A stretch of DNA of 64,000 nucleotides, from the sequence record OP123707.1, one strand, 5' to 3'. The notes under the pieces are model-generated. The model was not told where the DNA came from. It was given only the letters and a program-made list of their open reading frames with translations, and searched no databases. How positions within the stretch are numbered: the stretch's first letter is position 1; each line of letters opens with the position of its first letter. This document shows, one piece after another, positions 9,416 to 27,713 of the stretch. The position numbers and the translations under genes are program-made.

Positions 9416-10564
9416 ATGAGTACTTTTATCGGTCTTGGCACCGCTTTGCTGAGTTTGATCGGTAGTAAAGAAGCCGAGAATCTCGTAGAAACTGTCGATG
9501 CTAGCATTAAGCACGGCGGAGCAGGTTTAGCGACTGCCCAAGGTAACAGTGTTGTTACCGCTGCTCAAAAAACTATGATTCGCCCTATGGTTGTTGTAGA
9601 GCAATCAGTGGTACATCAGGACTATGCGTCCGACCTGATGACGATCATACAATTGCGTGATATTCAGGCAACTTTGACGCATTTACGCATGCAAGGTACC
9701 ATCGCTGGTCTGCAACTTGAGAAGTACATCGACCCTATTCGTCCTACTCGTAACATGGGTCGTCGCCTAGGCAGCTTCGGTGGTTTGGAGTCTTTTGGTG
9801 GCACACATCTAGTGAAACCGGAAGTTGAAGAGATCGCAGGTCAAGAAGCTCTGGACAACAAAGAACCAGAGAAAACACCAAACGGTGTGGTCATTGATTC
9901 TAAAGCAGCTCAAACGGTCCTGAGCGAATACACACCTTTAGCTCTAGGTCGTACTGTAGATGCACAAATTACCCTTGACGACAAAACCATCACGTTCCCG
10001 CTAACGTTCCGTCAGATCCCAGTTCCAATGGGTCCTCGTGACATCGAACGTATTTTCGACAACGCGAAAGGTGAAGACTCTTGGGGTACACGTTTTGATA
10101 AGTTAGACGTGGGTATGATCACTACACCTGAACTGCTTACTGGTCGTGACATCATCAAAGATAAGTTCCGTGTTCGCTTAGAAGATTTGAAAGCCAACAC
10201 CAACTATATCAACGACTCGATCAAGAACCAACGCAATCACGTTGCTAAAGCAGTAAGAACGGGTCAGATGTCCATGAACAACATGGCTAACACGTTCATC
10301 ATCACCGACACCACAGCTCGTCAAATCGAGTTGGCGACGGGTAAACGTTTTGATAACGTGTCTCAGCGTGAGTCTCTGTGGAAAGGTCTGCGTGCAAACA
10401 CTATCGTGATTTGTAATGAAGCGCGTGGTTTGTTTACGTTCTACACCATGGGCATCAAACTCCCTGAGCAGTACACTCGTAACGACATCAAACAGAAAGC
10501 GGCTAAAGAGTCTAGCGTAGGTTCTTTGGCGGACATCATGAAACTTCTTAACGGCGGTATGTAA
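9416..10564 (+). CDS. Inner body protein (phiKZ gp89-like)
   Basis: 382 aa; GGLE and AGQE sites near aa 125-145; synteny and size. Confidence 0.65.
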   Translation: MSTFIGLGTALLSLIGSKEAENLVETVDASIKHGGAGLATAQGNSVVTAAQKTMIRPMVVVEQSVVHQDYASDLMTIIQLRDIQATLTHLRMQGTIAGLQLEKYIDPIRPTRNMGRRLGSFGGLESFGGTHLVKPEVEEIAGQEALDNKEPEKTPNGVVIDSKAAQTVLSEYTPLALGRTVDAQITLDDKTITFPLTFRQIPVPMGPRDIERIFDNAKGEDSWGTRFDKLDVGMITTPELLTGRDIIKDKFRVRLEDLKANTNYINDSIKNQRNHVAKAVRTGQMSMNNMANTFIITDTTARQIELATGKRFDNVSQRESLWKGLRANTIVICNEARGLFTFYTMGIKLPEQYTRNDIKQKAAKESSVGSLADIMKLLNGGM

Positions 10565-11456: not shown

Positions 11457-11975
11457 ATGAGTGACTTTCGTAAAGTTACCTACGGCTATGCTGATAGTCG
11501 TTTAATGGACCCTACGCTAACGGTGATGAACGGCATTCTTCGTGCTTACGTTAAAAGTTCGCAAGACATGGAGATGATGATCGACCCAGGTTCTATTAAA
11601 GAAACCCTGGAGTTGGCCCAGAAATTCATCGGTGGGGATTTCAAACACTGGATGATGGCTAACTACGATCACGGTCAAGGTCCACGTGCACGCTTAGTGC
11701 GTAACATCGTGAAGTTCTTGAACGGTGACATCTCAGCTCGCACACTAACTCAGTGCATCACTGCTGACGAACAATACGTGACGACCACGGAATTGAAGTT
11801 TGTGAAAGGTGCATTTCGCGGTGTAGTGGATCGTCGTGATTACGATGACGTAGAACGTGTCATGGCTGAACTGACTGATCGTGATTTCTACCTCTTAGTA
11901 GAAGGCATTGGTCCTCAGATGTTGGCTCGCATGTTGATCACTTTTAACGGAGAGTCTGCATATGGACGAAACTAA
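11457..11975 (+). CDS. Head protein (phiKZ gp91-like)
   Basis: 172 aa, GGGAG RBS; synteny and size. Confidence 0.6.
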   Translation: MSDFRKVTYGYADSRLMDPTLTVMNGILRAYVKSSQDMEMMIDPGSIKETLELAQKFIGGDFKHWMMANYDHGQGPRARLVRNIVKFLNGDISARTLTQCITADEQYVTTTELKFVKGAFRGVVDRRDYDDVERVMAELTDRDFYLLVEGIGPQMLARMLITFNGESAYGRN

Positions 11976-13242
11976 CGTTAACGACGAACTGGCTAGTATT
12001 AACGTCGTAACGTCTCCAGAACTAGCAGAGCAAGCTAACGAAGGTCGTGACCTAGTTCGTTTGCAAGAAGACATTCAACAGTCCATCGATCGTGTTGCTG
12101 CGGTTAAAGAAGTCCTAGGTGAAGCACAACCAAAAGACGTTAACCAGTTGTTCGGTAACATCGTCGATCGCCAACTAGAACGTGTTGGTGTTCGTTCCTT
12201 CGGTGACGACCCGAGTGTCAGTGGTCTAGAGAACCTCGGTTACGGCATGACGCCACAACAATACCTCGACAGTCGTCTCGCTGGCTGTGAATCATTCCTT
12301 AGTGAATTCGCGGATTGGTCTAAGAACGTAACTCGCAGTTTCTTCTCTGACATCATTGAACGTTTAGCGTCATTGAGAGAAGACCACGATTCTTTGGCTA
12401 AAAAGGCGGACGCGCTTACGGTGATCGTTAACGACCGAGAAACCGTGTTCCCGAAAGACCTGTTGTCTCTCGGTGCGGCTAATCGTGTCCTGTTAATGAA
12501 CGGCAGCATCCCAGCTGACTTAGTGGCGCAGGTCAATCGCTTCACGGCAACAACGCGTGCGATCACCACCAACTTCTACCGTTTGAACCAAGCGAACTCT
12601 AACGAGATCATTTCGTTCTTTGGTGGGTTTGTTGGTCTGAGTGAAGACGATGCTCGCAACCGTCTTCTGATGGCTCCTAAGGCATTGTCGAAGTACCAGT
12701 TCAAAGAAGCCATGTTCCAGGTTAAAGAAGAGTCTAACAACGTCTACCAGACACGCGGCAGCGTGGAGCTTTTAGGTGGACGTCGTTACTACAACTCTTT
12801 CTTGCTGAACCGTGACCCCCTTCCTGATTTCAACAGCCTTTCTGAGTGGTTGGAGATTTACCGTAAACATGAGTGTGTGGAACTTCGTAAGGGTGACCAT
12901 GCGAACGAAGGTGAACTTCAAGTGAAAGGCTTAGATCGTGAAGCGGTAAGCAAAGCACTGAAAATGATCAAAGGCACATTACGTGACGTTGAGACCTTGT
13001 TTAAAGAAGGAGATCGTTATTTAGTGAATGGTGACGAGTATCGTAAATTACTGGCCGTGGTGAAAGATGGTGAGTGGGGTGATGAGGTGAAAGCCGAGAT
13101 CATTAACTCATTCACGTCTCTGATCATGACTCGTAACAGCGAACAAGTCAAAATGCGTTCGGATGTGGTTCGTTACTCTACATTGGTAATGATGGCTGTG
13201 ATGAACGTTTGTGACGCCTCTATGGAGCGAAGCAATGGATAA
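11962..13242 (+). CDS. Inner head protein (phiKZ gp92-like)
   Basis: 426 aa; SGLE and AGCE sites followed by the helix SFLSEFADWSKNVTRSFF. Confidence 0.65.
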   Translation: MDETNVNDELASINVVTSPELAEQANEGRDLVRLQEDIQQSIDRVAAVKEVLGEAQPKDVNQLFGNIVDRQLERVGVRSFGDDPSVSGLENLGYGMTPQQYLDSRLAGCESFLSEFADWSKNVTRSFFSDIIERLASLREDHDSLAKKADALTVIVNDRETVFPKDLLSLGAANRVLLMNGSIPADLVAQVNRFTATTRAITTNFYRLNQANSNEIISFFGGFVGLSEDDARNRLLMAPKALSKYQFKEAMFQVKEESNNVYQTRGSVELLGGRRYYNSFLLNRDPLPDFNSLSEWLEIYRKHECVELRKGDHANEGELQVKGLDREAVSKALKMIKGTLRDVETLFKEGDRYLVNGDEYRKLLAVVKDGEWGDEVKAEIINSFTSLIMTRNSEQVKMRSDVVRYSTLVMMAVMNVCDASMERSNG

Positions 13243-14194
13243 TCCTGATTACACCCCGGAAGAGATGCAACGTGCGCTACAAGCGTTGAGTGGAGAAGAA
13301 TCTTTATTCAGTGACATTAAAGCGGCGTTGGGTTTCGAAACGAGTAAGGTGGAACAGGTGGAAGGATTGACCAATGGTAAATTGGTCAGTCAATTCGCTT
13401 TAGGTGCGAATACAGTCGGTCGTCTAACGGCCAAGGCGTTGGGTTATAATGCCGGAGTGATCAGCACTCTGTTGACCCGTGCTAAGTCTGTGGACACACA
13501 TGAAGTGAAATGCTCAGGTAAGTTGATCGGTGACCTCACCGCCCAAGGAGATTTAGATCATTTGCTCAGTGATCAGAAAACTCTTTCGGAAACCATCACG
13601 ATGGTCATGAAGTACCAAAGTGAACTCGAGTCGTACGGAAAGGAAATCCAGACGTTGATGAAAGGCGCAGCCTCCGCCAAAGACAACGCTAAGATGACCG
13701 AGTACTCAACTCGACTAGGTGGGGTTACCGTGCCTGTGTTGAAACTTTCTAATAAAGAAGGGGAAGGTTACGAGTCTGACACGTTACCGATGGGTAAGAC
13801 GATTAGCTCTAAACCAACCAACAACGCAGTTACGTATCAACTTAACGGCAACGCAGGATCAGTGAGCGAGGCTGAACACCAATTTGATTCTGCGGAACTT
13901 TCCAAGTTCCTCAATCAACTGAAGTGGGTCAACACTCAGCAGAAAGCGTTGAGTGAGATGATTAATCGTTACGCCAAATTCGTAAAAGAGTGGGGTAGTA
14001 CGGTGAAAGACCTACAAGGACATCTAGATAAGACTGAAGGGATTTCTAAGTCTGTGGAAAATGCGTTAGTGACTCACATGTCGCTGAACAGTTCGCAAAT
14101 CGAATTCTACACGACGTTCCTACCTCGACTTATCGCCTACCTTAACCATTACGTTACCCAAGGTTGCGATCTGGCAACAGTAGTAACTAAATAA
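13235..14194 (+). CDS. Inner head protein, divergent family member with short propeptide
   Basis: Start moved to ATG 13235 (GGAG 7 nt upstream); SGEE-SLFSDIK site near the N-terminus. Confidence 0.6.
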   Translation: MDNPDYTPEEMQRALQALSGEESLFSDIKAALGFETSKVEQVEGLTNGKLVSQFALGANTVGRLTAKALGYNAGVISTLLTRAKSVDTHEVKCSGKLIGDLTAQGDLDHLLSDQKTLSETITMVMKYQSELESYGKEIQTLMKGAASAKDNAKMTEYSTRLGGVTVPVLKLSNKEGEGYESDTLPMGKTISSKPTNNAVTYQLNGNAGSVSEAEHQFDSAELSKFLNQLKWVNTQQKALSEMINRYAKFVKEWGSTVKDLQGHLDKTEGISKSVENALVTHMSLNSSQIEFYTTFLPRLIAYLNHYVTQGCDLATVVTK

Positions 14195-14214
14195 ACGTCA
14201 TAAAGGGGACTATC

Positions 14215-15507
14215 ATGTCACTGACTATTAAACAAATCCTAGCAGCACAAGCTGGTATGGAAAACCTCGACACAGCAGCGGTAGAAGTGCCTGAACTTAC
14301 TCCGGTTGAGCAAGCTGATCTACAAAACGAAGTAGAGCATGCTCGTCTAGAAAACGAGATTCGTGAGAACTCTAAAGAGATCTCTCAACTTGCTGACGCG
14401 ATCGAAGAAGTTGACGAAGACGTTGAAGAACTGGAAGAAACCGTTGCAGGTCTTGAGTTCTTAGCAGCACAACCAGAACTGAACCGTGGTGCAATGAATT
14501 ACCTGTACCACCGCGCAAGCAAAATTGTTCATCGCCTAGGTGGTGAAACAACAGAGCAAGTAGTGGGTAATGAGTCGCTGGAATCAGACGATGTCTACCG
14601 AGCAGCAGTAGTATCTGGTTGTGAAGGCTTCATGGATACCATGAAGAAGGCTTACAACGCTACAGCAGATTTCGTGAAGTCCATTTTCTACAAACTGTTA
14701 GACGGCATTAAATCTTTGTTCAACATCTCTTTTGATCAAGCTAAGAAAGCTGAAAAGTTAAAAGAAGCAATTAAAGACAAAGAGGTCAAAACTGAGATCA
14801 CCCTAGGTGGCTGGAACCGTTTCTTTAATGGTAAGCTCTCAACTAACGATAACGCTTTGAAAGCGATCGGTGCGGTTATCCCTGATTTTGGCGCACTCCT
14901 GAAAGACTTCTCAGGCTCCACGGAATTCACTAAAGAGACCAATGAGAAATTGGTGAAGGATATGCTTGCCGTTGGTAAAAAGTTCGATGACGCTGGAAGA
15001 AAAAATACCGCAAACATTTTCATCTTCGGTCATAATTCCATCACTGCACACCGAACCTCCGATGCGACATTCATCAAGTGGTGTGTTCCTTATGAAAGCG
15101 ACGGTTGGGATGCCAGCAACATTGAAAAGGCAATAAATGAATTCGATTTCAATGTTACCGCTTGGGATAAAATCAACATTGACAGTTCCGCAAAACTGAC
15201 AGGTAAACATCAACCTATGATCACCAAGTTCCATGTTGATGCGCTTTTCAACACAATCGCTTCAAACAGTGAACTTGTTAAGAAGTTAAAATCAGATGTT
15301 GAAGGTCTAAAATCGACTGTTGATGGTATCGTTAGCAAGTTGAAACAAGGTCCTAAGAACGATTCTGGTGATGCAGAAGCAACTAAGAAAGCGATCAGTG
15401 TTCTTAAGAAACTGATTGCCAAGTACAGTCAGTTAGTGAACAACTATTGTCGTGTTGTTTCTAATATTGACGCTGCTAAACTAGCTGGAATCAAAGCACA
15501 CTTCTAA
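14215..15507 (+). CDS. Inner head paralog 1 (phiKZ gp93/94/95-type family)
   Basis: AGME, AGLE, VGNE and SGCE sites; acidic coiled-coil propeptide; LGGW motif; ends KAHF. Confidence 0.75.
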   Translation: MSLTIKQILAAQAGMENLDTAAVEVPELTPVEQADLQNEVEHARLENEIRENSKEISQLADAIEEVDEDVEELEETVAGLEFLAAQPELNRGAMNYLYHRASKIVHRLGGETTEQVVGNESLESDDVYRAAVVSGCEGFMDTMKKAYNATADFVKSIFYKLLDGIKSLFNISFDQAKKAEKLKEAIKDKEVKTEITLGGWNRFFNGKLSTNDNALKAIGAVIPDFGALLKDFSGSTEFTKETNEKLVKDMLAVGKKFDDAGRKNTANIFIFGHNSITAHRTSDATFIKWCVPYESDGWDASNIEKAINEFDFNVTAWDKINIDSSAKLTGKHQPMITKFHVDALFNTIASNSELVKKLKSDVEGLKSTVDGIVSKLKQGPKNDSGDAEATKKAISVLKKLIAKYSQLVNNYCRVVSNIDAAKLAGIKAHF

Positions 15508-15514
15508 TTTAATG

Positions 15515-15557
15515 AGGGTCGGGGTTACGACCCCGGTCCTTAATATTTCATTTTTTT
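15515..15557 (+). terminator. Hairpin with UACG loop, possible terminator or stabiliser
   Basis: AGGGTCGGGGT-TACG-ACCCCGGTCCT followed by a delayed T-rich tract. Confidence 0.55.
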
Positions 15558-15580
15558 AATCATCGTCAAAGGAAAAAATA

Positions 15581-16753
15581 ATGAAACGTAACATTACTCA
15601 TACGCTGCGTGCCATGGCAGGTATGGAATCTATGGCTGAAGAACTACCTTTAGAAAGTCAGATTGAGTTGGCTGGTGATGTGGCTGAACTTCGTGCTGAA
15701 GCTGAAACCAAAGAACTTGAAAAAGAAATTCAAGAAATGGGTGAGCAGGCAATTGTTGAAGATGAGTTACGTAAAGAGCTTGAAGACTGTGTTGACGGCA
15801 TGGAGTTCCTTAAACAACACCCGAACCCTCAGGCGATGGTGTTGCTTTACAACCGCGCTGACCGCATCCATGTTAAGTTAGGCGGAGTATCTACTAAACC
15901 TCGCGCAGGCATGGAGTCGGTAGACACACGCACTCTAGAAGCTCACATGATTGTTGGTTGTGAGTCTTTCATGGATACCTTGAAGAAAGGTGCGGATGAT
16001 ACTTGGAAGTTCTTGAAGGCTTTGTGGGAACGTCTGGTGGCCTACGTCGTCGAGAAGACTAACGCCGCTAAACGACTAAGTACTCGCATGGATAAACTCA
16101 TTAAGAAGTTAGAGTCTGACGAAACTGAGATCAAGGAAGAAGTCACATACGGCAAATGGACTGCGTACATGGCTATGTTCTCCAATGGGCGTACTACACC
16201 GATCCAAGAAATCAGTAAACGCTTGGTCAACTCCATCATACCAAAAGACTCAGCAGAAGGTCTAGTTGCAAACGCGAAACACATCCACGAGACTCTTACG
16301 AGCTTCACTTCCAAACTGTCTGAAACCACTAAAACTGAAAAAGGCAAAATGGTTCGTGTTTTCTCTAAAGAAGGTTTGGATTTGGAATACCTTAGCGCGC
16401 GTCCAGAAACAGTCAAGGAAGCGCTGGAGTTCTACCGTACTTTCCGTAAACATGATTTTAAAGTAAACTACACTGCTAAAGAAAAATCATTCCGTCCAAC
16501 CATGCCTAAATCAGGTTACTTGTCGTTCGCTAAACATGTTAAAGAGATCGCGGAAGAAGTGTTCGAACAAGAAGCTATTGCTAAACAAGGTGAGCGCGAA
16601 GTTACTAAAACTACAAAAGAGCTAGATAAAGACGTTCGTGATCTGTTGCGTGCTCAGTCTCGTTTCACCACAGCTATCTTGACCTACGTTACCAGCCAGC
16701 GTTTGAAATATGCTCAGGCATCAGCTGATTACGTCGCAGCTTGTATCAAATAA
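15581..16753 (+). CDS. Inner head paralog 2
   Basis: AGME, DGME, AGME and VGCE sites; YNRADRIHVKLGG; YGKW motif. Confidence 0.75.
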   Translation: MKRNITHTLRAMAGMESMAEELPLESQIELAGDVAELRAEAETKELEKEIQEMGEQAIVEDELRKELEDCVDGMEFLKQHPNPQAMVLLYNRADRIHVKLGGVSTKPRAGMESVDTRTLEAHMIVGCESFMDTLKKGADDTWKFLKALWERLVAYVVEKTNAAKRLSTRMDKLIKKLESDETEIKEEVTYGKWTAYMAMFSNGRTTPIQEISKRLVNSIIPKDSAEGLVANAKHIHETLTSFTSKLSETTKTEKGKMVRVFSKEGLDLEYLSARPETVKEALEFYRTFRKHDFKVNYTAKEKSFRPTMPKSGYLSFAKHVKEIAEEVFEQEAIAKQGEREVTKTTKELDKDVRDLLRAQSRFTTAILTYVTSQRLKYAQASADYVAACIK

Positions 16754-16834
16754 GTTTAGACTAAGGTGATTTTTACTTTAACATGATTAACTTCACTGAA
16801 CTTTACCTGAGCGATAACGCTAAACTAATCTAAT

Positions 16835-16875
16835 GAGGGTCGGGGTTTCGGCCCCGACCCTCTACTTTACTTTTT
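16835..16875 (+). terminator. Intrinsic terminator with UUCG loop
   Basis: GAGGGTCGGGGT-TTCG-GCCCCGACCCTC followed by TACTTTACTTTTT. Confidence 0.75.
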
Positions 16876-16903
16876 CACTAACAACCTCTATTAAGGAATC
16901 ATA

Positions 16904-18103
16904 ATGAAACGTAATGTAGTTCAAGGTTTACGTATTTTGGCGGGAATGGAAACACTTGAACCAGCACCAATTTCTCTAGAAGCGCAAGTTAAGTTAGAAG
17001 ACGAGCTAGCAGATCAACGTGCGGATAACGAGATCATCGAGCTGGCTAAAGACATCGATGAGAGTGTGGAAGAACTCCAAGAACGTGAAGAATTAGAACA
17101 AGAACTTACGGAAGTAGTGGATGGTATGGAGTTCTTATTAAAGAACAACAACCCTCAGGCTTTCGGCATCCTTTACGCTCGCGCTAACCGTATCCATGTT
17201 AAGTTGGGTGGTCAGTGCACACTACCACGTGGCGGCATGGAATCTATTGACGCTCGTCGTATTGAAGCGCATGCCATCGTCGGTATGGAGTCTTTCATGG
17301 ACACTCTCAAAAATGGTGTAGAAATTGGTAAAGACTTAATCCGCCGTGCATTCCAATTCCTTATGGATCTTTGGAGTACAGTAATGTCTTCTGAGTCTCG
17401 CACTAAGCGTAAGATTGAAGATCTTAAAGCTCGTCTGGAAAAGAACGGTCTTAAAGAGAAAGTGAAACTTGGTGACTGGGCCCACTTCTATCCAAAATAC
17501 TCCACTTTAAGTGAAGAAAAAATAGAAGCGTTAAAAGAAGGAAACGAAGGAGCTGAAGCCTTTGAGTCGTTCTTTACCAACCTTGATGGTAAGTTAAATA
17601 GCCAAATGACGGTTGTTCAACACTGCATTGCTATGCACCAAGGTATTAAGTCTTACTTCAGTCTACCTCAAGCTAACGTCGTTAAGAACGGTGACTACCT
17701 TCACCTACGCGCACCGCTAGTAAACGGTTATCGTGTGTTGGATAAAGAAATTGACGACACGTATGACGCGATTGACTTCTTAAACTCGATTCGCGTTCTC
17801 CCACCTATGACGGAGAAACCGAACGGTAACGAAGTCCCAAGAGTATTTGACGAAGAGATGATCAAAAATTATCTTAATGAGTTCCTTCCAGAGACAATGG
17901 ATAAGTTGAAAAATGCCAAGTCTGTGATTAAAGAAACTAAAGATAATATGAACCGTTTGATCGGAAAAGAACAAGATCCGATTACTCGTAAAATTTTCAA
18001 GGCTTACCTAACGGCGGTTGTTAACGTTTATTCTGGCAACCTGCGTGAAACCCAACGTATTTTAAATAATGAGTTGGAAATGGTGAAAGCACACATCGCT
18101 TAA
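16904..18103 (+). CDS. Inner head paralog 3
   Basis: AGME, DGME, GGME and VGME sites; YARANRIHVKLGG; LGDW motif; ends KAHIA. Confidence 0.75.
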   Translation: MKRNVVQGLRILAGMETLEPAPISLEAQVKLEDELADQRADNEIIELAKDIDESVEELQEREELEQELTEVVDGMEFLLKNNNPQAFGILYARANRIHVKLGGQCTLPRGGMESIDARRIEAHAIVGMESFMDTLKNGVEIGKDLIRRAFQFLMDLWSTVMSSESRTKRKIEDLKARLEKNGLKEKVKLGDWAHFYPKYSTLSEEKIEALKEGNEGAEAFESFFTNLDGKLNSQMTVVQHCIAMHQGIKSYFSLPQANVVKNGDYLHLRAPLVNGYRVLDKEIDDTYDAIDFLNSIRVLPPMTEKPNGNEVPRVFDEEMIKNYLNEFLPETMDKLKNAKSVIKETKDNMNRLIGKEQDPITRKIFKAYLTAVVNVYSGNLRETQRILNNELEMVKAHIA

Positions 18104-18111
18104 TCACAACC

Positions 18112-18181
18112 TAAGGTAGTCTTCGGGCTACCTTATCTTAATCTATCACGGTGGATTAAGATAAGACCGGACGCGGTCTTA
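18112..18181 (+). other. Three consecutive RNA hairpins in a 104-nt spacer
   Basis: Stems 18112-21/18126-35 (loop TTCG), 18134-45/18152-63 and 18162-69/18174-81 (loop GACG); no U-tract. Confidence 0.7.
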
Positions 18182-18207
18182 GTTCAATACTTCATGAAGG
18201 ATAACTT

Positions 18208-19464
18208 ATGAACATTCGTAACCAACTGGCTTCATTAGCAGGCATGGAAGGCTTTGGCTCTATGTCTCGTGATGAGGTCACTGATGATCTCCATCAATCG
18301 ATTATTAAAAACATTTTTAATACCGGTGATAAAGACAACCTTTCACCTCCTACCGATTTAGAACAACAGAAAGTCGACGAAACGCTAGCAGCAGCGACGA
18401 CTGACCTAAATGAATCAGAAAAACTTGTAGAACTTTATCTTGAGCAAGAGCAAGCTCAGGAAGAAGCCGTGCAAGATCTCCATAAAGCCGTAGACGGCAT
18501 GGAGCAGCTTCTAATGACTGAATATACGCCAGAGGTTTTAAACGTCCTCACGCGCCACACAGAGCGTTGTGCTAAACGTGCAGGTGTTCCGCTTGCTTTA
18601 GGTGTTAGCGGGATGGAATCTTTCACACCCGCTTCTGTGTATCTGGCGATGCGAGATGGCTTAGAATCATTGGCTAACGTAGAACGCGATAACGTCGGTT
18701 CCATTAAAGGTGGGTACGAGCGACTCACCCACATTTGTGACGATGTTGAAAAGCGTTTTGATCATTTACTGGTCAACTTACAACTTCTCATGAAACGCCT
18801 CAAAAACAATCCTGAGATTAAATCAGAGATTGTTCTAGGGGAGTGGAACAAATGGCTGGATGTCAGAGACCGTGCGCCTAGAAAGATCGTCCGTCTTGTT
18901 AACTTGATGGAAGTAGAATACATCTTAGACCGTATTAAAGTCTTGGATATCGTTTCTAAAGATGACTTAACATCAGCTAAGGCGCAAGAGTTGCTCAGCA
19001 AAGATATCAAGAAGTCTGTTGATGTATCTCGTGATCGTACTGAAGACGGAAAGAATCACAATGCGTGGGAGTTCCGTTTCAACACGGCTTGTTTCTATTT
19101 TGAACTGCCTAACCAGAACGGTACTTCTTTGGAAGCATTGAAAACGTACAACCTACGAATGCAACCATACGGTGGTCGTATTAACGACAAAGCGAAAAAG
19201 GTTTACCAGAGTGTTAACGAGATGGAAAGTGAGCTAGAGGAAATGATCTCTATTGCTGAAGAGACTCGCTCCACTTACGTAGACTGGCGTAAGACATTAA
19301 AGACGGAAGGTGGGATGGTGGTATCAGCGTTTAAGTCTGGTAAAGTTGATCCTAGCAAAGCTCTGGCTTACATCGGTTTACATAACCGCTTCATGGTGAC
19401 CGCACAACGTGGTATCTTCGAAATTATTTCAGCGTACGGACATTTGTTCCGTGCACACCTTTAA
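18208..19464 (+). CDS. Inner head paralog 4
   Basis: AGME, DGME, SGME and DGLE sites; LGEW motif; ends RAHL. Confidence 0.75.
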   Translation: MNIRNQLASLAGMEGFGSMSRDEVTDDLHQSIIKNIFNTGDKDNLSPPTDLEQQKVDETLAAATTDLNESEKLVELYLEQEQAQEEAVQDLHKAVDGMEQLLMTEYTPEVLNVLTRHTERCAKRAGVPLALGVSGMESFTPASVYLAMRDGLESLANVERDNVGSIKGGYERLTHICDDVEKRFDHLLVNLQLLMKRLKNNPEIKSEIVLGEWNKWLDVRDRAPRKIVRLVNLMEVEYILDRIKVLDIVSKDDLTSAKAQELLSKDIKKSVDVSRDRTEDGKNHNAWEFRFNTACFYFELPNQNGTSLEALKTYNLRMQPYGGRINDKAKKVYQSVNEMESELEEMISIAEETRSTYVDWRKTLKTEGGMVVSAFKSGKVDPSKALAYIGLHNRFMVTAQRGIFEIISAYGHLFRAHL

Positions 19465-19486
19465 TCTCAGTAATTAAGGAACAGTA

Positions 19487-20740
19487 ATGTCTAAATACAA
19501 ACACAACTCTCTGATTGCAGCCATGGGGTTTCAAGTTGCCGGGATGGAAAACCTTCCTGCGGAAACGGATACTCTCGAGATGAACCCAGTGGTTCTTCCT
19601 ACTGAAGAGGATCAAGAACGAGCCGCCGCTGAAGCCGAAATTAAGAAAGTCAGCGACGAATTGACTGCTGCGTTACAAGCCGATGCGGAACACCAACAAA
19701 CGGTCGCGGAAGCGACTGAAGCCATCTCGGGCTTGGAGTCCATGTTCCAAGGTGACTTTGATGAAGCTGTTTATCGTAAACATGTCGGTACCCTACAAGC
19801 AATTAGTGAACGCACAGAAGTCCCTCTTGCGGTTACTGTGGACGGTATGGAGTCCCTAAGTTCAGCACAGATTTATCTGGACACCATGAACGGTTTAGAA
19901 GGGTTCGTGGATAACTTGAAAAGTGCGGGTAAAACCATTAAACAGTTTATCATCCAGATCTACAAATACTTAAAAGAACTTTTCACGTCATTCGTAGATC
20001 ATTTTAAAAGCATTGAAAAACAGCTAGTCGAGACTCAGCGATTACTTAATAACGTAGATGAGATCAAGGGTCAGATTACCTTAAATAAAAAGTGGAACCA
20101 AGCACTTAATATTGGCGAAATTCCCATGATCAAAGTCAGAGATATGTCCGTTTTAATAGAAATGGCAGAGGACATTGGTGATGTTAATATTGGTCAAATA
20201 GTGGATAAATCGACTCCACTCAGCTCGAAAGCTATCAAGTTCTTTAAAGAGCGTATTACACAACAACCTGGAGTTAAATTGGTCGGCACAGCCACGGATA
20301 AAGGTCCTAGTAGTACGTCAGTCAAAACTGAGGTTTATGAATTGATAATCGGGAATGTGGAGCTTGGCTATTTCGTCCCGGCTTCGCTAGTCGAAGGAAT
20401 TGAATCGGTGAAAGCTTTTGAGGCATTGGAAGCCATTCGACCTGAAGTAACCGGTGGGGTTCGTGAGAGTGCTTACACCGGCAAACGTGAAATCACCCAG
20501 GAACTTCACGATTTGATAGGTTGTGCATCGGCCGCGAAAGCTGTATTTGAAAAATTGAAGCGAGACATTGATAAAGAACGTGACGCTTTGATCGCAAGGA
20601 TTAATGATCACGACACTTTTTCTGATCGTAATGGGGTTGCAGCAGGAGTAAAAGCAAAACGTAAGTATCTTGAAACAAATGAGAACACACTCTTTAAATT
20701 GCTGCAAGCTAAAAACCACTGTATTCGTGCTCACCTATAG
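19487..20740 (+). CDS. Inner head paralog 5
   Basis: AGME, SGLE, DGME and NGLE sites; ITLNKKW motif; ends RAHL. Confidence 0.75.
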   Translation: MSKYKHNSLIAAMGFQVAGMENLPAETDTLEMNPVVLPTEEDQERAAAEAEIKKVSDELTAALQADAEHQQTVAEATEAISGLESMFQGDFDEAVYRKHVGTLQAISERTEVPLAVTVDGMESLSSAQIYLDTMNGLEGFVDNLKSAGKTIKQFIIQIYKYLKELFTSFVDHFKSIEKQLVETQRLLNNVDEIKGQITLNKKWNQALNIGEIPMIKVRDMSVLIEMAEDIGDVNIGQIVDKSTPLSSKAIKFFKERITQQPGVKLVGTATDKGPSSTSVKTEVYELIIGNVELGYFVPASLVEGIESVKAFEALEAIRPEVTGGVRESAYTGKREITQELHDLIGCASAAKAVFEKLKRDIDKERDALIARINDHDTFSDRNGVAAGVKAKRKYLETNENTLFKLLQAKNHCIRAHL

Positions 20741-20756
20741 GTCTTGAGTATAATGG

Positions 20757-20788
20757 TTACCTCGTCCGTAGATTCATGGACGAGGTAA
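20757..20788. other. 13-bp hairpin upstream of paralog 6
   Basis: TTACCTCGTCCGT/ATGGACGAGGTAA with loop AGATTC and no clear U-tract. Confidence 0.6.
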
Positions 20789-20914
20789 TTATATGTAGAA
20801 TACTATAGTACTGTAGTGCTACACCTTTCGGAATTGTATGTGACAGTTCCGTTTAGATAATTTAATTAAATTCTCTAGTCAAAAGACTAAACTAATTTTA
20901 AAGGAAACATTGAT

Positions 20915-22141
20915 ATGTCTCAAATTCGTAATATGCTTATGGCTCACGCTGGCATGGAAACTCTAGACGCTGAAGAAGTAGCGGTAGTTGAAAAGACGGC
21001 TGAAGAAGTGGCTGAGCTAGTAGCAGACAAAGCTGCTGAAGAAGTCAAAGCTGAAGTTAACGAACTGGCTGACGAAGTTGAAGAACTGTCTGAAGAGATC
21101 GATGAGATCGAAGAAGACGTTGAAGAACTTGAAGAATGCGTTGACGGCATGGAAGCGTTGCTACAAGCTGGTGCATTCAACGGTGCAGCATTCGGTCTTC
21201 TTTACAACCGTGCAGAGAAACTAAACCGTAAACTTGGTGGCAACCAAGCTGGTTCTGTAGTTGGTCAAGAAGCTCTAGGCGATGCAACTTCTGCGGCTCT
21301 AGCAGCACGTGCTGGTATGGAAGACTTCATGGAAACTGCACGCGGCTACAAAGACGCAGCGGTTAAATTCATCATGTCTATGTACGAGTCGCTAAAAGCA
21401 TTCCTGAAAGGTCTGTTCGACAAGTCTGTTGCTATCGAAAACCAAGTGAAAGCAACGACTGCTCGTCTTGAAAAGACTGAAGAAATGAAGAAAGACGTTA
21501 AGCCAGGTAAATGGGCTTCTCTAGCGAAAATCCGTGACACGTCTAAGCTTAAAGCAATCACTTCAGCGGTTGACTCTGTAGTTTCTGCTGGTGCTAAACT
21601 AACAGCTAACGATGTTGCTGGTTACGCTAACGCTTACCGTGCGCTAAAAGCTGCTATCGTTAACCTTGGTAAAGAAGGCGAAAGCAAGCAAACTAAATCT
21701 GGCGACGCTACTACTCACCAAATCAAAGTTGGTGCAGTTCAGATTTCTGCGACTGTATTCGACGGCGAAATCAAAGAGCACGCTGACGTTTCTAAAGCAG
21801 CTAAAGCAACTCGCATCTCTTACAACGTAGCGAAAGCTGAAGGCGAAGTGAAGTTCGAAGCGCTAACTAAAGACAGCGCTAAACAGCTAATCGCTTCTGC
21901 TAAAGCAGACGGTGAAGCACTGAAAGGTCTGAAAGAGTCTAAAGCTGGTAACGACAAAGGTCGTGACGAACTAGTAGCAGCTCTTAAGAAGACTGAAGGC
22001 AAGAAAGAAGAGTGGGTTAAACCTTCTATCTCTGCACTGAAAGCTTCTACTTCAATGACGAACTCTGTGTTCACAGTTGTAGCTAAGATCCTTGGTAACG
22101 TAGCTGACGCTAAACTATCAGCTGTTAAAGCTTACCTATAA
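20915..22141 (+). CDS. Inner head paralog 6, probably the high-copy member
   Basis: AGME, DGME, VGQE and AGME sites; PGKW motif; ends KAYL; capsid-like optimised codon usage. Confidence 0.8.
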   Translation: MSQIRNMLMAHAGMETLDAEEVAVVEKTAEEVAELVADKAAEEVKAEVNELADEVEELSEEIDEIEEDVEELEECVDGMEALLQAGAFNGAAFGLLYNRAEKLNRKLGGNQAGSVVGQEALGDATSAALAARAGMEDFMETARGYKDAAVKFIMSMYESLKAFLKGLFDKSVAIENQVKATTARLEKTEEMKKDVKPGKWASLAKIRDTSKLKAITSAVDSVVSAGAKLTANDVAGYANAYRALKAAIVNLGKEGESKQTKSGDATTHQIKVGAVQISATVFDGEIKEHADVSKAAKATRISYNVAKAEGEVKFEALTKDSAKQLIASAKADGEALKGLKESKAGNDKGRDELVAALKKTEGKKEEWVKPSISALKASTSMTNSVFTVVAKILGNVADAKLSAVKAYL

Positions 22142-22171
22142 TCCAACTCCCGAGTGGGTTAGATAACTGTC

Positions 22172-22220
22172 AATCGGGGAGGGGCTTCGGTCCCTCCCCG
22201 ATTTTTACACTTTTTTATTT
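22172..22220 (+). terminator. Intrinsic terminator
   Basis: AATCGGGGAGGGGC-TTCG-GTCCCTCCCCGATT followed by T-runs. Confidence 0.85.
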
Positions 22221-22232
22221 AACGAGGTCGTT

Positions 22233-23315
22233 ATGCTTAATCAAACAGGCGGTGCTCCAGCTCAGATCTCTACCGTAAAAGACAAATACGAAGAGACCAA
22301 GGACGGAACCAACAAAGCACTGCGTGACGCCAAAGAACCGTTAGACCCTAAAGATGCGGGAGAAGTGAAATCCGAACTCCCTAATGACGGGGATGATTTT
22401 AAAGAGTCGATTGGGTCTACGGATTCCATTTACTCTTTAGGTGGGCTGAACTCCTTACCGGTAGATGGTTGTGAAGGTTTCGTGGAGAACGCTAAGGCTG
22501 CGGTGGAATGGTTATGGAAACGTGCGGTTGACATCTTTAACTTAATTGCTGATTATGTTTACAACCGAGTGTCTAATATCCGTCGTCGCATTACTCGTCT
22601 TAAGCACAGCTTTAATGATAATGGGGTATCTCTGAAAGACGCGAAGTACCCAGCGTCAGTGGTTCGTCTAACTTCGAACCCTACGGTTCCACGTACACCT
22701 AACTTTGCGATCAAGTCTCTTGAGCAAGCTCAGGAGATGTACAAAAAGGTCATGAAGCAACAAGACCAGATCAATAACCTCACACGTCCACTTCCACCAG
22801 AAACTACACGTGAACAATTGTTGAACTTCAGCGAATCGCTATCAAACTCGTACGTAAGTGCTTTAGGTGGTAATAAAGTCAAAGACCACGTTTATGAAGT
22901 TGATATGCCGACAGGCTTCCAGGTTATGAAAGCAACAAGCAATCGCGCTCGTGGCTTCAATGGCTTTGGTTTGAGTGAGTTCTTCCGACCTAAGATTAAA
23001 GTCAACATCCCTGAGTCATTCATTGTTTCAGCGGACGTGGTACAGAGTATTTTGTTGAAAGCGGACGTGCTGTTGATGGACGTAGAGAAAGTGCACAAGT
23101 CTCAACGTAGCTTCTCTAATAAGTTCAAGCGTTCTGTGGATCCTCTAGTGAGTTCTGTGAAGAACTACCCTGAGAAAACCCGTGAAGAGATCACTAAGTT
23201 CTACCGTTGGCTAGTGAACTACCAACACCGTACGATCTCCATTCCTCTTAACTACTACTTGAGTGTTATTTCTGCCAGCATCGATTTGGCGAAAGCCCAA
23301 GTTCACCAAAAGTAA
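22233..23315 (+). CDS. Inner head protein (phiKZ gp96-like)
   Basis: Hydrophilic propeptide, DGCE-GFVENAK site and amphipathic helix; size. Confidence 0.65.
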   Translation: MLNQTGGAPAQISTVKDKYEETKDGTNKALRDAKEPLDPKDAGEVKSELPNDGDDFKESIGSTDSIYSLGGLNSLPVDGCEGFVENAKAAVEWLWKRAVDIFNLIADYVYNRVSNIRRRITRLKHSFNDNGVSLKDAKYPASVVRLTSNPTVPRTPNFAIKSLEQAQEMYKKVMKQQDQINNLTRPLPPETTREQLLNFSESLSNSYVSALGGNKVKDHVYEVDMPTGFQVMKATSNRARGFNGFGLSEFFRPKIKVNIPESFIVSADVVQSILLKADVLLMDVEKVHKSQRSFSNKFKRSVDPLVSSVKNYPEKTREEITKFYRWLVNYQHRTISIPLNYYLSVISASIDLAKAQVHQK

Positions 23316-26426: not shown

Positions 26427-27713
26427 ATGGGTTTCTTAACCAAAGGTCCAGGGATCAATGATCAACCCGATATGGACCAACCAACCATCTACAATAAACT
26501 GTATCGTCACGCCATTGTCGATTCCGAATACACCCCACACACCAGTTTGCTGCACAACGTCAGTGGTCAACCGATTCGTTGTGATTACTACCGCCAGTAC
26601 CTAGGACAAGGTGAAGAAGTCCTCGGTCTCCAGCTGAATGACATTTCCACTTACCAGTCGTACACGGAAATCCGTAATCTCGTTTACAAACGGGATGGGG
26701 ACCCGTCTCGTAACTGGAACGAAGAACGTTACGAAGTCAACCAAACGTGGATGGGTTATTTCCTGTTTGACCTCACCCCATTAAAAGGGGACATCTTCGT
26801 TCAAGACATTGGTGATGGTCGTGCAGGTTTAGTGCAATTAACCAAGACCCCTGAACCGATGTCAATGGCACGGGACAAGGTCTACTACTGTGAATGTACA
26901 TTGCTGGAAGAAATGACTCAAGAGATTGAGGACAACATTCGCAGCAAAGTGGTGGAGACGTCGTGGTTCTCTTCTGAGTCCGCGTTAAAAGGTGGTCATG
27001 CGATCATCACTGAGAACGACCGCACCTTAAACGATCAATTGGATCGTTGGGCGTACATGATCTCACAACATCTGCTTACCACGCATTACTGGAATCCGGA
27101 GCGCACCATTGCGATTAAGGAAGGGGAAGATTACATTTACGACCCTTACTTAGTTCGTTATCTGCAACGGGTGATTCCTCACAAGTACATTCCAGGTGCT
27201 TCCCCAATCGAAGGACTAAACTTTACCGTAGGACGTAACTTCAACTACGAGAAAGACCTCACGATTTGGGATTGCTTTACCCAAGGTTCGTTTGACTTCC
27301 TACCGATGATTGATCGGACGATGTTCAAATACAACCGCACCAGCATGATGGGGACTCGTGGTTACACTGGGTTCTTAGCGACGAAGTTCGACTACATCGT
27401 GCTGCCATCTAAATTAGAGTTTAATGAACTCAACCCACTGTACGTGTCCCGAGACAATGGTTTGGCGTATCGTCCACCAGTAGAAGAACCGGATGCTTAC
27501 CAAAACTATTTCACTGACGAGTTTTACAACGGTTCTTACGGTAATGAGTTTGAACAATGGTGTAAAGCTTTCTTTGGAGACCGTACCGTGGATCGAGCCA
27601 AGCTTTTGCAACTTTGTAAAGATTATGCAAACTGGGAACCAAAAGACCAAATCTACCGAGCCGGTTTATTGGTCTCAGCGATCATGATCTCGAAACGCGT
27701 ATTCGGAGGATAA
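26427..27713 (+). CDS. Virion structural protein (phiKZ gp99-like)
   Basis: 428 aa; GAGG RBS; synteny. Confidence 0.6.
   Translation: MGFLTKGPGINDQPDMDQPTIYNKLYRHAIVDSEYTPHTSLLHNVSGQPIRCDYYRQYLGQGEEVLGLQLNDISTYQSYTEIRNLVYKRDGDPSRNWNEERYEVNQTWMGYFLFDLTPLKGDIFVQDIGDGRAGLVQLTKTPEPMSMARDKVYYCECTLLEEMTQEIEDNIRSKVVETSWFSSESALKGGHAIITENDRTLNDQLDRWAYMISQHLLTTHYWNPERTIAIKEGEDYIYDPYLVRYLQRVIPHKYIPGASPIEGLNFTVGRNFNYEKDLTIWDCFTQGSFDFLPMIDRTMFKYNRTSMMGTRGYTGFLATKFDYIVLPSKLEFNELNPLYVSRDNGLAYRPPVEEPDAYQNYFTDEFYNGSYGNEFEQWCKAFFGDRTVDRAKLLQLCKDYANWEPKDQIYRAGLLVSAIMISKRVFGG

Follow-up and report, generated by a model that had tools for sequence, protein, structure and literature searches.

Vibrio phage phiKT1028 carries a tandem array of six genes for paralogues of the internal head proteins of the phiKZ/SPN3US type (PF12699; inner-body or ejection proteins). 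The genes, called P1 to P6 here, are located on the plus strand at positions 14215-22141 of the window, i.e., the stretch of 64,000 nucleotides (nt) from sequence record OP123707.1 analyzed in this study, which agrees with the phiKT1028 record at 100% identity and with identical coordinates. We consider it likely that P1 to P6 are internal head precursors processed by a protease, with P6 as the fixed main component and the others as accessory, recombining members. Family membership, motif conservation, a common predicted fold, a protease gene, a codon bias, and a mosaic pattern among related phages were established directly.

The phiKT1028 genome comprises 238.8 kb and is classed as Gorgonvirinae/Tidunavirus. 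Under the name 'Ariel', the phage was experimentally shown to be a nucleus-forming chimallivirus (PMC10587174). An initial annotation made from the DNA sequence had proposed six adjacent genes of 390-430 amino acids (aa), and exactly there six intact plus-strand open reading frames (ORFs) were found, none of them broken (430, 390, 399, 418, 417, and 408 aa for P1 to P6). All six are labeled 'hypothetical protein' in the GenBank record OP123707.1 and go unmentioned in the paper on phiKT1028; the RefSeq label of their orthologues in the phages pTD1, VP4B, PDCC-1, Aphrodite1, 2 TSL-2019, and USC-1 is 'internal head protein'.

Assignment to the PF12699 family

The curated Pfam cut-off of 27 bits for PF12699 (phiKZ_IP) was exceeded by five of the six genes (P1, P2, P3, P5, and P6), four of which match the whole model of 387 positions, core included. 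All six paralogues are matched by phrog_5750 'internal head protein' (3e-61 to 5e-123) and by a hidden Markov model (HMM) of the family with E-values of 1e-76 to 1e-120, so that the array is not a chance finding. The family profile also matched gp162 (4.6e-8) and gp93 (3.4e-7) of phiKZ in PDB entry 8y6v. An exhaustive profile search yielded 277 cluster representatives at E <= 0.001, mostly in end-to-end alignments, and a word-index homologue search with the six-paralogue alignment yielded 15 matches, mostly P1 orthologues. The initial proposal of inner-head paralogues of the phiKZ and SPN3US kind is thereby borne out by the PF12699, phrog_5750, and 8y6v profile matches.

Like gp92-97, gp162, and gp163 of phiKZ and gp53-58 of Goslar, P1 to P6 belong to PF12699, are clustered in multiple copies next to head genes, and have a helix-rich predicted fold. 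N-terminal S/A/G-x-E protease sites in a chimallivirus with a gp175-type protease are shared with both phages (PMC10587174), and one dominant member is shared with Goslar, as judged in phiKT1028 by codon usage. Unlike in phiKZ and Goslar, to whose proteins the identity is 12-25%, the six copies of phiKT1028 are of nearly equal length and form an uninterrupted tandem, each with its own ribosome binding site (RBS) and mostly with a hairpin, and this array is known from its sequence alone.

Conserved N-terminal part and predicted processing

Invariant positions in the alignment of the six paralogues (P1 numbering) are A13-G14-M15-E16, G79/E81, G118/E120, G135/E137, K192, and W200, with the glutamates of the P1 G-x-E motifs at aa 16, 81, 120, and 137. 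The AGME proposed near the start is present in all six proteins. Four in-register G-x-E sites are indeed invariant; AGME is one of these four and not an addition to them. Also, K and W of the proposed motif K-x-x-[IV]-x-x-G-x-W are invariant, with one extra residue inside the motif in P5. The C-terminal [KR]A[HY][LFI], expected in five of six, ends P1, P4, P5, and P6, while P3 has an extra Ala after it and P2 lacks it; a [KR]A[HY]-hydrophobic ending recurs across 36 proteins from seven phages. The segment following the last G-x-E site is strongly amphipathic, as had been supposed for a helix in this region.

The mean pairwise identity of the six paralogues is 23-41% over approximately the first 210 aa, 10-19% in the core, and 27% over the last 14 aa, and the identity profile of 106 family members is the same. 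Plotted by position, the identity thus fits the initial description of conserved ends and a diverged middle, divergence along the protein being non-uniform. In BLASTP, every pair of paralogues aligned over the N-terminal half, and P1/P6 as well as P4/P5 over the full length. In the 106-member alignment, the four glutamates are the only invariant or near-invariant columns (93-100% conserved). Two residues upstream of each of them, i.e., at the P3 position of the site (not to be confused with the paralogue P3), 84-89 of the 106 sequences have G, 5-15 have A, and no more than 6 have S, and the middle residue is hydrophobic.

The cleavage motif of phiKZ gp175 is S/A/G-X-E and that of SPN3US gp245 is A-X-E (PMC5694885, PMC10052503). 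Because the [G>A>S]-x-E sites of P1 to P6 match this prohead-protease motif, they were read as processing sites. A homologue of the gp175-type head maturation protease is encoded outside the window at 138874-139515 of OP123707.1 (tblastn with phiKZ gp175: 28.9% identity, 73% of the query, E 5e-15), and its Aphrodite1 homologue is annotated as head maturation protease. In the GenBank record, the phiKT1028 protease homologue is split into two hypothetical proteins.

In SPN3US, mass spectrometry of gp53 and gp54 (paralogue family A) revealed the loss of propeptides of 125 and 137 aa, several internal cuts, a further cut near residue 12, and products of 31 kDa (PMC5694885, PMC10052503). The predicted values for P1 to P6 are similar: the segments up to the fourth site comprise 128-153 aa, the first sites are located at about aa 12-21, and the mature parts have 29-32 kDa; conserved N-termini on diverged paralogues are a further common trait. 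Unlike in SPN3US, which has two copies, both very abundant, with A-x-E sites, there are six copies plus three distant ones in phiKT1028, with mainly G-x-E sites and apparently unequal expression. The segments up to the fourth site are strongly acidic (net charge -12 to -25), and the predicted mature parts have an isoelectric point (pI) of 8.6-9.5 save for P3 at 7.0. For P1, a mature part of 293 aa with a pI of 9.2 is predicted.

Structural data of the phiKZ capsid showed that fragments of gp93 (14-84) and gp162 (19-134), situated between cleavage sites, stay on the inner face of the shell, while the helix-rich domains are released (PMC11297242). In the model from a phiKZ transposon study, the N-termini are wedged in the capsid, with the C-termini being freed by the protease and injected (10.1101/2025.11.23.690004). 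By analogy, the N-terminal part of P1 to P6 is plausibly a packaging tag, and the simplest explanation for its conservation is that docking to a common shell and cleavage by a common protease are required of every copy. The initial annotation had regarded the conserved frame as a tag for both packaging and ejection. The packaging half is supported by the homology to phiKZ gp93/gp162 and SPN3US gp53/gp54 (PMC11297242, PMC10052503, PMC5694885); the ejection half had to be dropped, since according to the prediction this part is cleaved away and is thus unable to mark the protein for ejection. We also considered whether the propeptides evolve in concert within the genome and rejected this, as orthologous propeptides are 61-97% identical versus 24-43% for paralogous N-terminal regions.

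The combination of an acidic propeptide and a basic mature part (net charge +9 to +13 in mature P1, P2, and P6) would also fit the neutralization of DNA charge, and thereby a purely structural role in which the proteins would cement the shell, form a scaffold of the inner body, or serve as DNA counter-ions within the capsid and would not reach the host to any meaningful extent, the variety among the copies then being drift under weak constraint on a bulk filler. Consistent with this, the N-terminal fragments of phiKZ gp93 and gp162 cement capsomers, gp162 is kept in the head (PMC11297242; 10.1101/2024.03.24.586471), gp93 co-pellets with DNA (10.1101/2025.11.23.690004), and no transmembrane segment was predicted in the six paralogues (highest 19-residue hydropathy 1.21). 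We nevertheless regard a role of this kind as very unlikely. Mature P3 is neutral, injection of PF12699 proteins was directly shown in phiKZ (gp92, gp93, gp95, and gp97) and Goslar (gp58), and the selection and replacement patterns described below do not look like drift.

Homology and predicted fold of the cores

For comparison of the cores, defined as the region after the W motif up to 25 residues before the end, a profile was built for each paralogue from its closest relatives, and the profiles were compared pairwise by hhalign. Eight of the 15 core-only pairs scored 32-162, whereas reversed-profile controls (n = 30) had a maximum score of 18.0 (mean 14, sd 2). These pairs connect all six cores in roughly collinear registers: P4/P5 (E 4e-26), P1/P6 (7e-10), P2/P6 (6e-8), P4/P6 (1.8e-5), P2/P3 (8e-5), and, at about 2e-4, P1/P2, P5/P6, and P3/P6. 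The P6 core is the hub, being joined to the cores of all other paralogues.

AlphaFold2 models based on the 106-sequence alignment reached a predicted local distance difference test (pLDDT) score of 90.1 for P6 and 87.2 for P5, with a predicted template modeling (pTM) score of 0.84 each. In both models, the elements follow in the same order. A long helix in the propeptide is followed by a second one and, past the last site, by two long ones; the W-motif loop and several helices come next, then a beta-meander of three to four strands with a short helix, further helices, and finally the long C-terminal helix. Foldseek searches of BFVD with the P5 and P6 models returned an identical top five, aligned along the entire protein (at least 413 columns) with template modeling (TM) scores of 0.61-0.84. 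The four named matches among them correspond to other slots of the array by length and source phage (pTD1 430 aa, Aphrodite1 399 aa, VP4B 409 aa, and USC-1 416 aa), and further matches were PF12699 proteins of PhiPA3, 201phi2-1, RAY, Ea35-70, and Ralstonia phages. For the phiKZ and Goslar paralogues, one helix-rich predicted fold was likewise stated in the literature. The cores of P1 to P6 are hence, by profile homology and the two models, diverged copies of one domain with one predicted fold, which is assigned to P1 to P4 by homology.

In a Foldseek search of the PDB with the full-length P6 model, propeptide included, nothing significant was found (best E 0.05, TM < 0.2). Elongated membrane-active helical proteins, i.e., ClyA/MakB-type toxins and type III tip proteins, were considered and rejected (SipD/IpaD E 0.17-0.8, MakB E 1.6, TM < 0.2), and a hydrophobic segment was not predicted either. 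IpaD/SipD also appeared in a sequence-profile search of the PDB at E 0.23-0.7, which is far below significance and a lead only, not evidence. Neither the searches of Pfam and phrog nor the Foldseek search of the PDB gave a match to a family of known function.

The common predicted fold disagrees with the initial idea that the cores are exchangeable, unrelated cargo domains: the core-only profiles join all six, and the AlphaFold/Foldseek check suggested for the cores, run on P5 and P6, gave a common predicted fold and not distinct cargoes. The same result bears on a related explanation, in which the conserved ends form a packaging and ejection frame and the cores are distinct injected effectors, for example anti-defence or host-specific ones, which are swapped in an arms race like the Ip proteins of T-even phages or phiKZ gp184 (Tad1). 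In its favor, the only part that T4 Ip1-3 have in common is a packaging leader, and the restriction enzymes that they block are different (PMC12373910). The T-even Ip1-3 locus indeed resembles the phiKT1028 array in being a variable set of head proteins whose shared N-terminal packaging leader is cleaved off by the prohead protease, and related phages differ in their sets of injected proteins (PMC12373910, PMC3012670). In T-even phages, however, the leader has 10-20 aa and the mature proteins are unrelated, while in phiKT1028 the N-terminal 130-150 aa or so are shared and the mature parts are homologous with one predicted fold. Anti-restriction activity was shown for Ip1-3.

A T-even-type architecture was rejected. 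A short leader as the sole shared sequence does not agree with about 200 shared aa (23-41% identity) plus a C-terminal helix; the first G-x-E site (aa 12-21) is reminiscent of such a leader, but three more sites come after it; and unrelated mature parts are contradicted by the core scores and the single predicted fold given above.

Allele types and mosaic arrays in related phages

PF12699 arrays with syntenic flanks throughout contain six copies in phiKT1028, Aphrodite1, and USC-1, five in pTD1 and VP4B, and four in PDCC-1 and 2 TSL-2019. Clustering at 60% identity resulted in 15 allele types in nine arrays, two of which are from uncultured phages represented by Logan contigs (L009 and L014; Table 1). 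IMG/VR scans with P6 and with an alignment of P6 orthologues matched only the isolates pTD1, VP4B, and PDCC-1. Type A (P6) is the sole type present in all nine arrays; type B (P4) is present in seven at 68-86% identity, and among the nine arrays, types L (P1) and M (P5) were found in phiKT1028 alone. Array content thus varies among the relatives, as the initial annotation had anticipated.

Table 1 Allele types of PF12699 genes in nine arrays, in gene order
Array	Allele types
phiKT1028	L C G B M A
pTD1	F C B E A
L009 (uncultured)	D C B E A
VP4B	F H B E A
L014 (uncultured)	F H G B E A
PDCC-1 and 2 TSL-2019	D C I A
Aphrodite1	D J K B N A
USC-1	D J K B O A

Phages that are otherwise nearly identical show differences at individual slots. 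L014 and VP4B are 99-100% identical at five slots, and their sole difference is an extra G-type gene with 77% identity to P3; L009 and pTD1 share 96-100% at slots 2-5 and 55% at slot 1. Compared to pTD1, the aa identity is 44% for P1, 98% for P2, 86% for P4, 40% for P5, and 83% for P6, with P3 lacking a counterpart and flanking genes at 65-84%. Identity is unevenly distributed within two of these proteins, namely 68% in the propeptide versus 29% in the core for P1 and 63% versus 25% for P5 (compared with pTD1 slots 1 and 4, respectively).

At the DNA level, the similarity to pTD1 (background 74-77%) extends from the upstream flank into P1 and stops at about codon 141 (last Glu 137). It also runs through P4 into P5, stops at about codon 156 (last Glu 138), and resumes in the spacer before P6. 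The last approximately 28 codons of P1 and the entire P2 form a block of 96.2% DNA identity to pTD1. The synonymous divergence (dS) of P2 versus pTD1 is 0.01-0.03 compared to at least 1.0 in the flanks, which indicates a recent transfer of the P2 cassette between the phiKT1028 and pTD1 lineages; P2 and slot 2 of VP4B share only 37% identity. While the P1 propeptide is nearest to pTD1 (68%), the P1 core shares more with Aphroditevirus alleles (42-45%) than with pTD1/VP4B (29-30%), and such different closest relatives point to separate histories of the two parts.

The P3 type is absent from pTD1, VP4B, PDCC-1, and 2 TSL-2019. Exactly at the ends of the 1.3-kb P3 segment lacking in pTD1 and VP4B, the heptamer CTAAGGT is present at 16761-16767 and 18111-18117, the only two copies within 14000-22400, and a terminator-like hairpin has the second copy as its left arm. 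Furthermore, a 51-nt element with a G+C-rich hairpin at 15504-15554 is repeated at 16825-16875 with 78% identity, far above that of the flanking coding sequences. Judged from these repeats, the hairpin-bearing spacers are plausible crossover sites.

The mosaic also supplies most of the evidence for the explanation by distinct injected effectors: there are 15 allele types in nine arrays, near-identical phages differ at single slots (L009 vs pTD1, L014 vs VP4B), DNA similarity ends just past the last cleavage site in P1 and P5, and propeptide and core of P1 are incongruent. The selection data do not agree with it. The ratio of nonsynonymous to synonymous substitution rates (omega) of the mature part is 0.05-0.07 for P4 and 0.05-0.08 for P2 and P4 together, compared to 0.07-0.13 in the flanks; for these two genes, conservation is higher in the mature part than in the propeptide, and no omega near or above 1 occurred among the comparisons with usable dS. 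Thus, the cores are not hypervariable as such, contrary to the initial description, the mature parts of P2 and P4 being under purifying selection. The sequence comparisons speak for old, discrete allele lineages under purifying selection that are shuffled by recombination, and not for continuous rapid change. Besides purifying selection within allele types, homologous cores of one predicted fold, no match to a family of known function, and an N-terminal part predicted to be removed, which could not guide ejection, make distinct effectors unlikely; that several phiKZ paralogues tolerate insertions in the laboratory host fits redundancy as well as specialization. The ideas of exchangeable cargo and of anti-defence functions are not supported by the analyses made here. 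For effectors among the accessory members, the positive support consists of the polymorphism, the SUKH fusion described below, and the precedents of T-even Ip1-3 and phiKZ gp184/Tad1.

For a purely structural filler, the low omega values of P2 and P4 are equally adverse, as they imply strong constraint rather than drift, and drift would leave the discrete replacement of alleles between near-identical phages unexplained.

Expression signals and codon usage

Upstream of all six genes an AAGGA-like RBS was found, and strong hairpins are located 3' of P1, P2, P3, P5, and P6. None follows P4, which is separated from P5 by 22 nt. The expectation of an RBS of their own and a downstream hairpin for most genes was thereby confirmed (RBS 6/6, hairpin 5/6). 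A scan for sigma-70 promoters gave no enrichment (14 found vs 17.9 expected), which is uninformative for a phage with its own RNA polymerases.

With capsid genes as reference, the codon adaptation index (CAI) of P6 is 0.74, the highest of 39 long ORFs in the window, and P6 contains no ATA, AGA, or TTA codon, in accordance with the capsid-like optimal codons noticed initially. The CAI of P1 to P5 is 0.29-0.44. Rare codons were not found to be concentrated in the cores, as had been suggested, since the CAI of the first 200 codons compared to that of the rest goes either way. The dS of P6 versus pTD1 (0.21-0.57) is several-fold below that of the flanking genes (1.0-2.1), in keeping with codon choice being under selection in a gene expressed at a very high level. 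From its sequence, P6 is predicted to be the dominant high-copy member, comparable to gp58 of Goslar with about 2150 copies per virion versus 50-330 for its paralogues. The assumption of one high-copy member with variable extras is therefore supported, as P6 looks like such a member from its CAI and its presence in all nine arrays while the others vary.

The low CAI of P5 (0.29) and P4 (0.36), together with a copy number ranging from 4 to 6, might suggest that P1 to P5 are decaying duplicates of P6 without a function of their own. This is extremely unlikely: six frames are intact with an RBS for each, omega values lie far below 1, most arrays retain type B (P4) at the identity given above, and no copy has lost any of the four processing sites.

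A SUKH domain in the propeptide of a relative

In an uncultured pTD1-like phage, recovered in two independent samples (L009:7016-8707 and L010:1643-3334), the slot-1 PF12699 gene encodes a protein of 563 aa (P0007) with a SUKH (SMI1/KNR4, immunity-type) domain at aa 30-148. The domain directly follows the first G-x-E site and is followed by a second, duplicated G-x-E site and then by a normal propeptide. Cutting at both flanking sites, if it takes place, would release a folded SUKH module of about 135 aa within the capsid. As far as its sequence tells, P0007 is the best support for a tag-and-cargo principle, though the passenger sits in the propeptide and not in the core. It also agrees with the N-terminal part as a packaging tag and counts in favor of injected effectors. 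Ten other long family members were scanned and contained no recognizable extra domain, so that P0007 is the sole clear fusion so far.

A similar case is phiKZ gp184 (Tad1), an anti-defence protein that is packaged and injected and for which, as for gp93, the published model has a capsid-wedged N-terminus and a C-terminal part that is freed by the head protease and injected (10.1101/2025.11.23.690004), a point in favor of the effector explanation; the example of P0007 suggests a similar transport for a folded module attached to a PF12699 precursor. Unlike P0007, gp184 is not a PF12699 protein, and P1 to P6 have no recognizable extra domain.

Proposed pathway of the internal head proteins

For the reading that we prefer, processed precursors with P6 as fixed main component, we infer cleavage, packaging, copy number, and ejection from experiments with phiKZ, SPN3US, and Goslar. 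With its N-terminal 128-153 aa, which are acidic and helical, each precursor would enter the procapsid, probably through attachment of this part to the inner face of the shell. There, the gp175-type protease would cut at the four [G/A/S]-x-E sites, and the cut after the last Glu would free a domain of 29-32 kDa. This domain, mostly basic and predicted to be helix-rich with a small beta-meander and a long C-terminal helix, would stay in the head with the DNA and would probably be expelled with it into the host at infection, as is the case for most phiKZ and Goslar members. P6 would be the bulk component, fixed and highly expressed as gp58 in Goslar, and P1 to P5 would be accessory and partly redundant members gained, lost, and replaced by recombination, with breakpoints near the propeptide boundary or in hairpin-bearing spacers. 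Most PF12699 proteins were reported to be injected, as was shown for phiKZ gp92, gp93, gp95, and gp97 and for Goslar gp58 (10.1101/2024.03.24.586471; 10.64898/2026.04.21.720040).

Several points weigh against this reading. Cleavage, copy number, and ejection are transferred from studied proteins with only 12-25% identity. In phiKZ, gp162 stays in the head, and ejection is hence not universal among paralogues (10.1101/2024.03.24.586471; 10.64898/2026.04.21.720040). Structures were predicted for P5 and P6 only, i.e., two of six, and the same family alignment was used for both models, which could favor a similar topology. Finally, P4 with 22.1 bits is below the Pfam cut-off of 27, and its membership rests on its phrog_5750 and family HMM matches (Table 2) and on the homology of its core to that of P5.

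Further family members and neighboring genes

The array exceeds six genes, as three distant relatives are encoded at 11962-13242, 22233-23315, and 3193-4647 (Table 2). The first, up2, was connected to the family by hhalign with 97.3% probability (E 2.4e-11) over 256 columns, two G-x-E sites included. For dn1 (96%, E 4.8e-9), the 86 matched columns cover only the module of the last G-x-E site and the following long helix, while the family HMM envelope is longer (aa 77-356); this gene is kept in all relatives at 59-78% identity. In the protein encoded at 3193-4647, which had no match in a Pfam scan, two G-x-E sites are present at aa 66-68 and 82-84, along with the helical region that comes after them.

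The gene up1 (13235-14194) was rejected as a paralogue (hhalign probability 1.5%). The product of 9416-10564, labeled 'capsid and scaffold' in relatives, was tested as a candidate protease and rejected, with no match in Pfam, NCBIfam, and PDB sequences. Neither of these two proteins is a PF12699 member or a recognizable protease. Both contain a conserved G-x-E, namely in the invariant GGLESFGG at about aa 122-129 of the 9416-10564 protein and in LAGEES at aa 18-23 of the 13235-14194 protein, and from these motifs they may be further substrates of the prohead protease. In addition, the GenBank annotation of 26427-27713 as 'indole-3-glycerol phosphate synthase/phosphoribosylanthranilate isomerase' appears to be wrong, as Pfam PF24214 (195.9 bits) and PF24215 (247.4 bits), both phage head-tail joining domains, were matched.

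Table 2 Predicted genes and hairpins of the PF12699 array in OP123707.1
Feature	Position	Strand	Evidence and remarks
P1, PF12699 internal head protein precursor, 430 aa	14215..15507	+	Pfam 81.3 bits, phrog_5750 1.7e-98; allele type L
P2, PF12699 precursor, 390 aa	15581..16753	+	Pfam 194.3 bits; allele type C
P3, PF12699 precursor, 399 aa	16904..18103	+	Pfam 178.0 bits; allele type G; present/absent cassette
P4, PF12699-type precursor, 418 aa	18208..19464	+	Pfam 22.1 bits, phrog_5750 2.3e-119, family HMM 2.6e-76; allele type B
P5, PF12699 precursor, 417 aa	19487..20740	+	Pfam 127.5 bits; allele type M
P6, PF12699 precursor, 408 aa	20915..22141	+	Pfam 115.4 bits, phrog_5750 5e-123; allele type A
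up2, distant seventh paralogue, 426 aa	11962..13242	+	PF12699 76.5 bits; 'virion structural protein' in relatives
dn1, 360 aa	22233..23315	+	phrog_5750 5.9e-8
Distant relative, 484 aa	3193..4647	+	family HMM E 2e-8 over aa 53-205
Terminator-like hairpin 3' of P1	15513..15542	+	-18.0 kcal/mol; inside 51-nt element 15504-15554
Terminator-like hairpin 5' of P3	16835..16862	+	-25.1 kcal/mol; inside repeat copy 16825-16875
Three successive hairpins 3' of P3	18112..18181	+	equivalent to the spacer between pTD1 slots 2 and 3
Long hairpin 3' of P5	20753..20792	+	-23.7 kcal/mol
G+C-rich hairpin followed by a T run, 3' of P6	22172..22203	+	-27.6 kcal/mol; kept in pTD1

Significance for phiKT1028 and the PF12699 family

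The family itself, multi-copy arrays, variable copy number, processing, capsid-bound N-termini, injection, and the individual dispensability of members are already published. The comparison made here adds, as incremental findings, that near-identical phages form a mosaic of allele types, that breakpoints are located at the propeptide boundary, and that a SUKH domain is inserted between cleavage sites in a relative; the locus itself is a formerly unannotated member of the family. The annotation of six 'hypothetical proteins' is corrected, and the allele sets can be used for comparative proteomics and structure determination.

A more far-reaching possibility, which we hold to be rather improbable, is that P1 to P5 form a recombining injected repertoire with one scaffold fold and allele-specific surfaces tuned to hosts or defences, the conserved, capsid-binding propeptide doubling as a homology arm for swapping. 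If true, the PF12699 array would be the jumbo-phage counterpart of the T-even Ip hotspot, and the SUKH insertion would show the same propeptide to be able to deliver foreign folded modules.

According to the literature, the function of PF12699 proteins, packaged at hundreds to thousands of copies and for the most part injected, is a key unsolved question of chimallivirus biology. The phiKT1028 locus leaves it unanswered and adds three descriptive points. In the Vibrio/Photobacterium group, the array acts like a set of cassettes: a single member is fixed and highly expressed, and the variable accessory ones are exchanged between phages that are otherwise nearly identical. Breakpoints at the predicted boundary of propeptide and mature part imply separate histories of the two. 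From the SUKH insertion with protease sites on either side, the propeptide seems able to carry a folded passenger.

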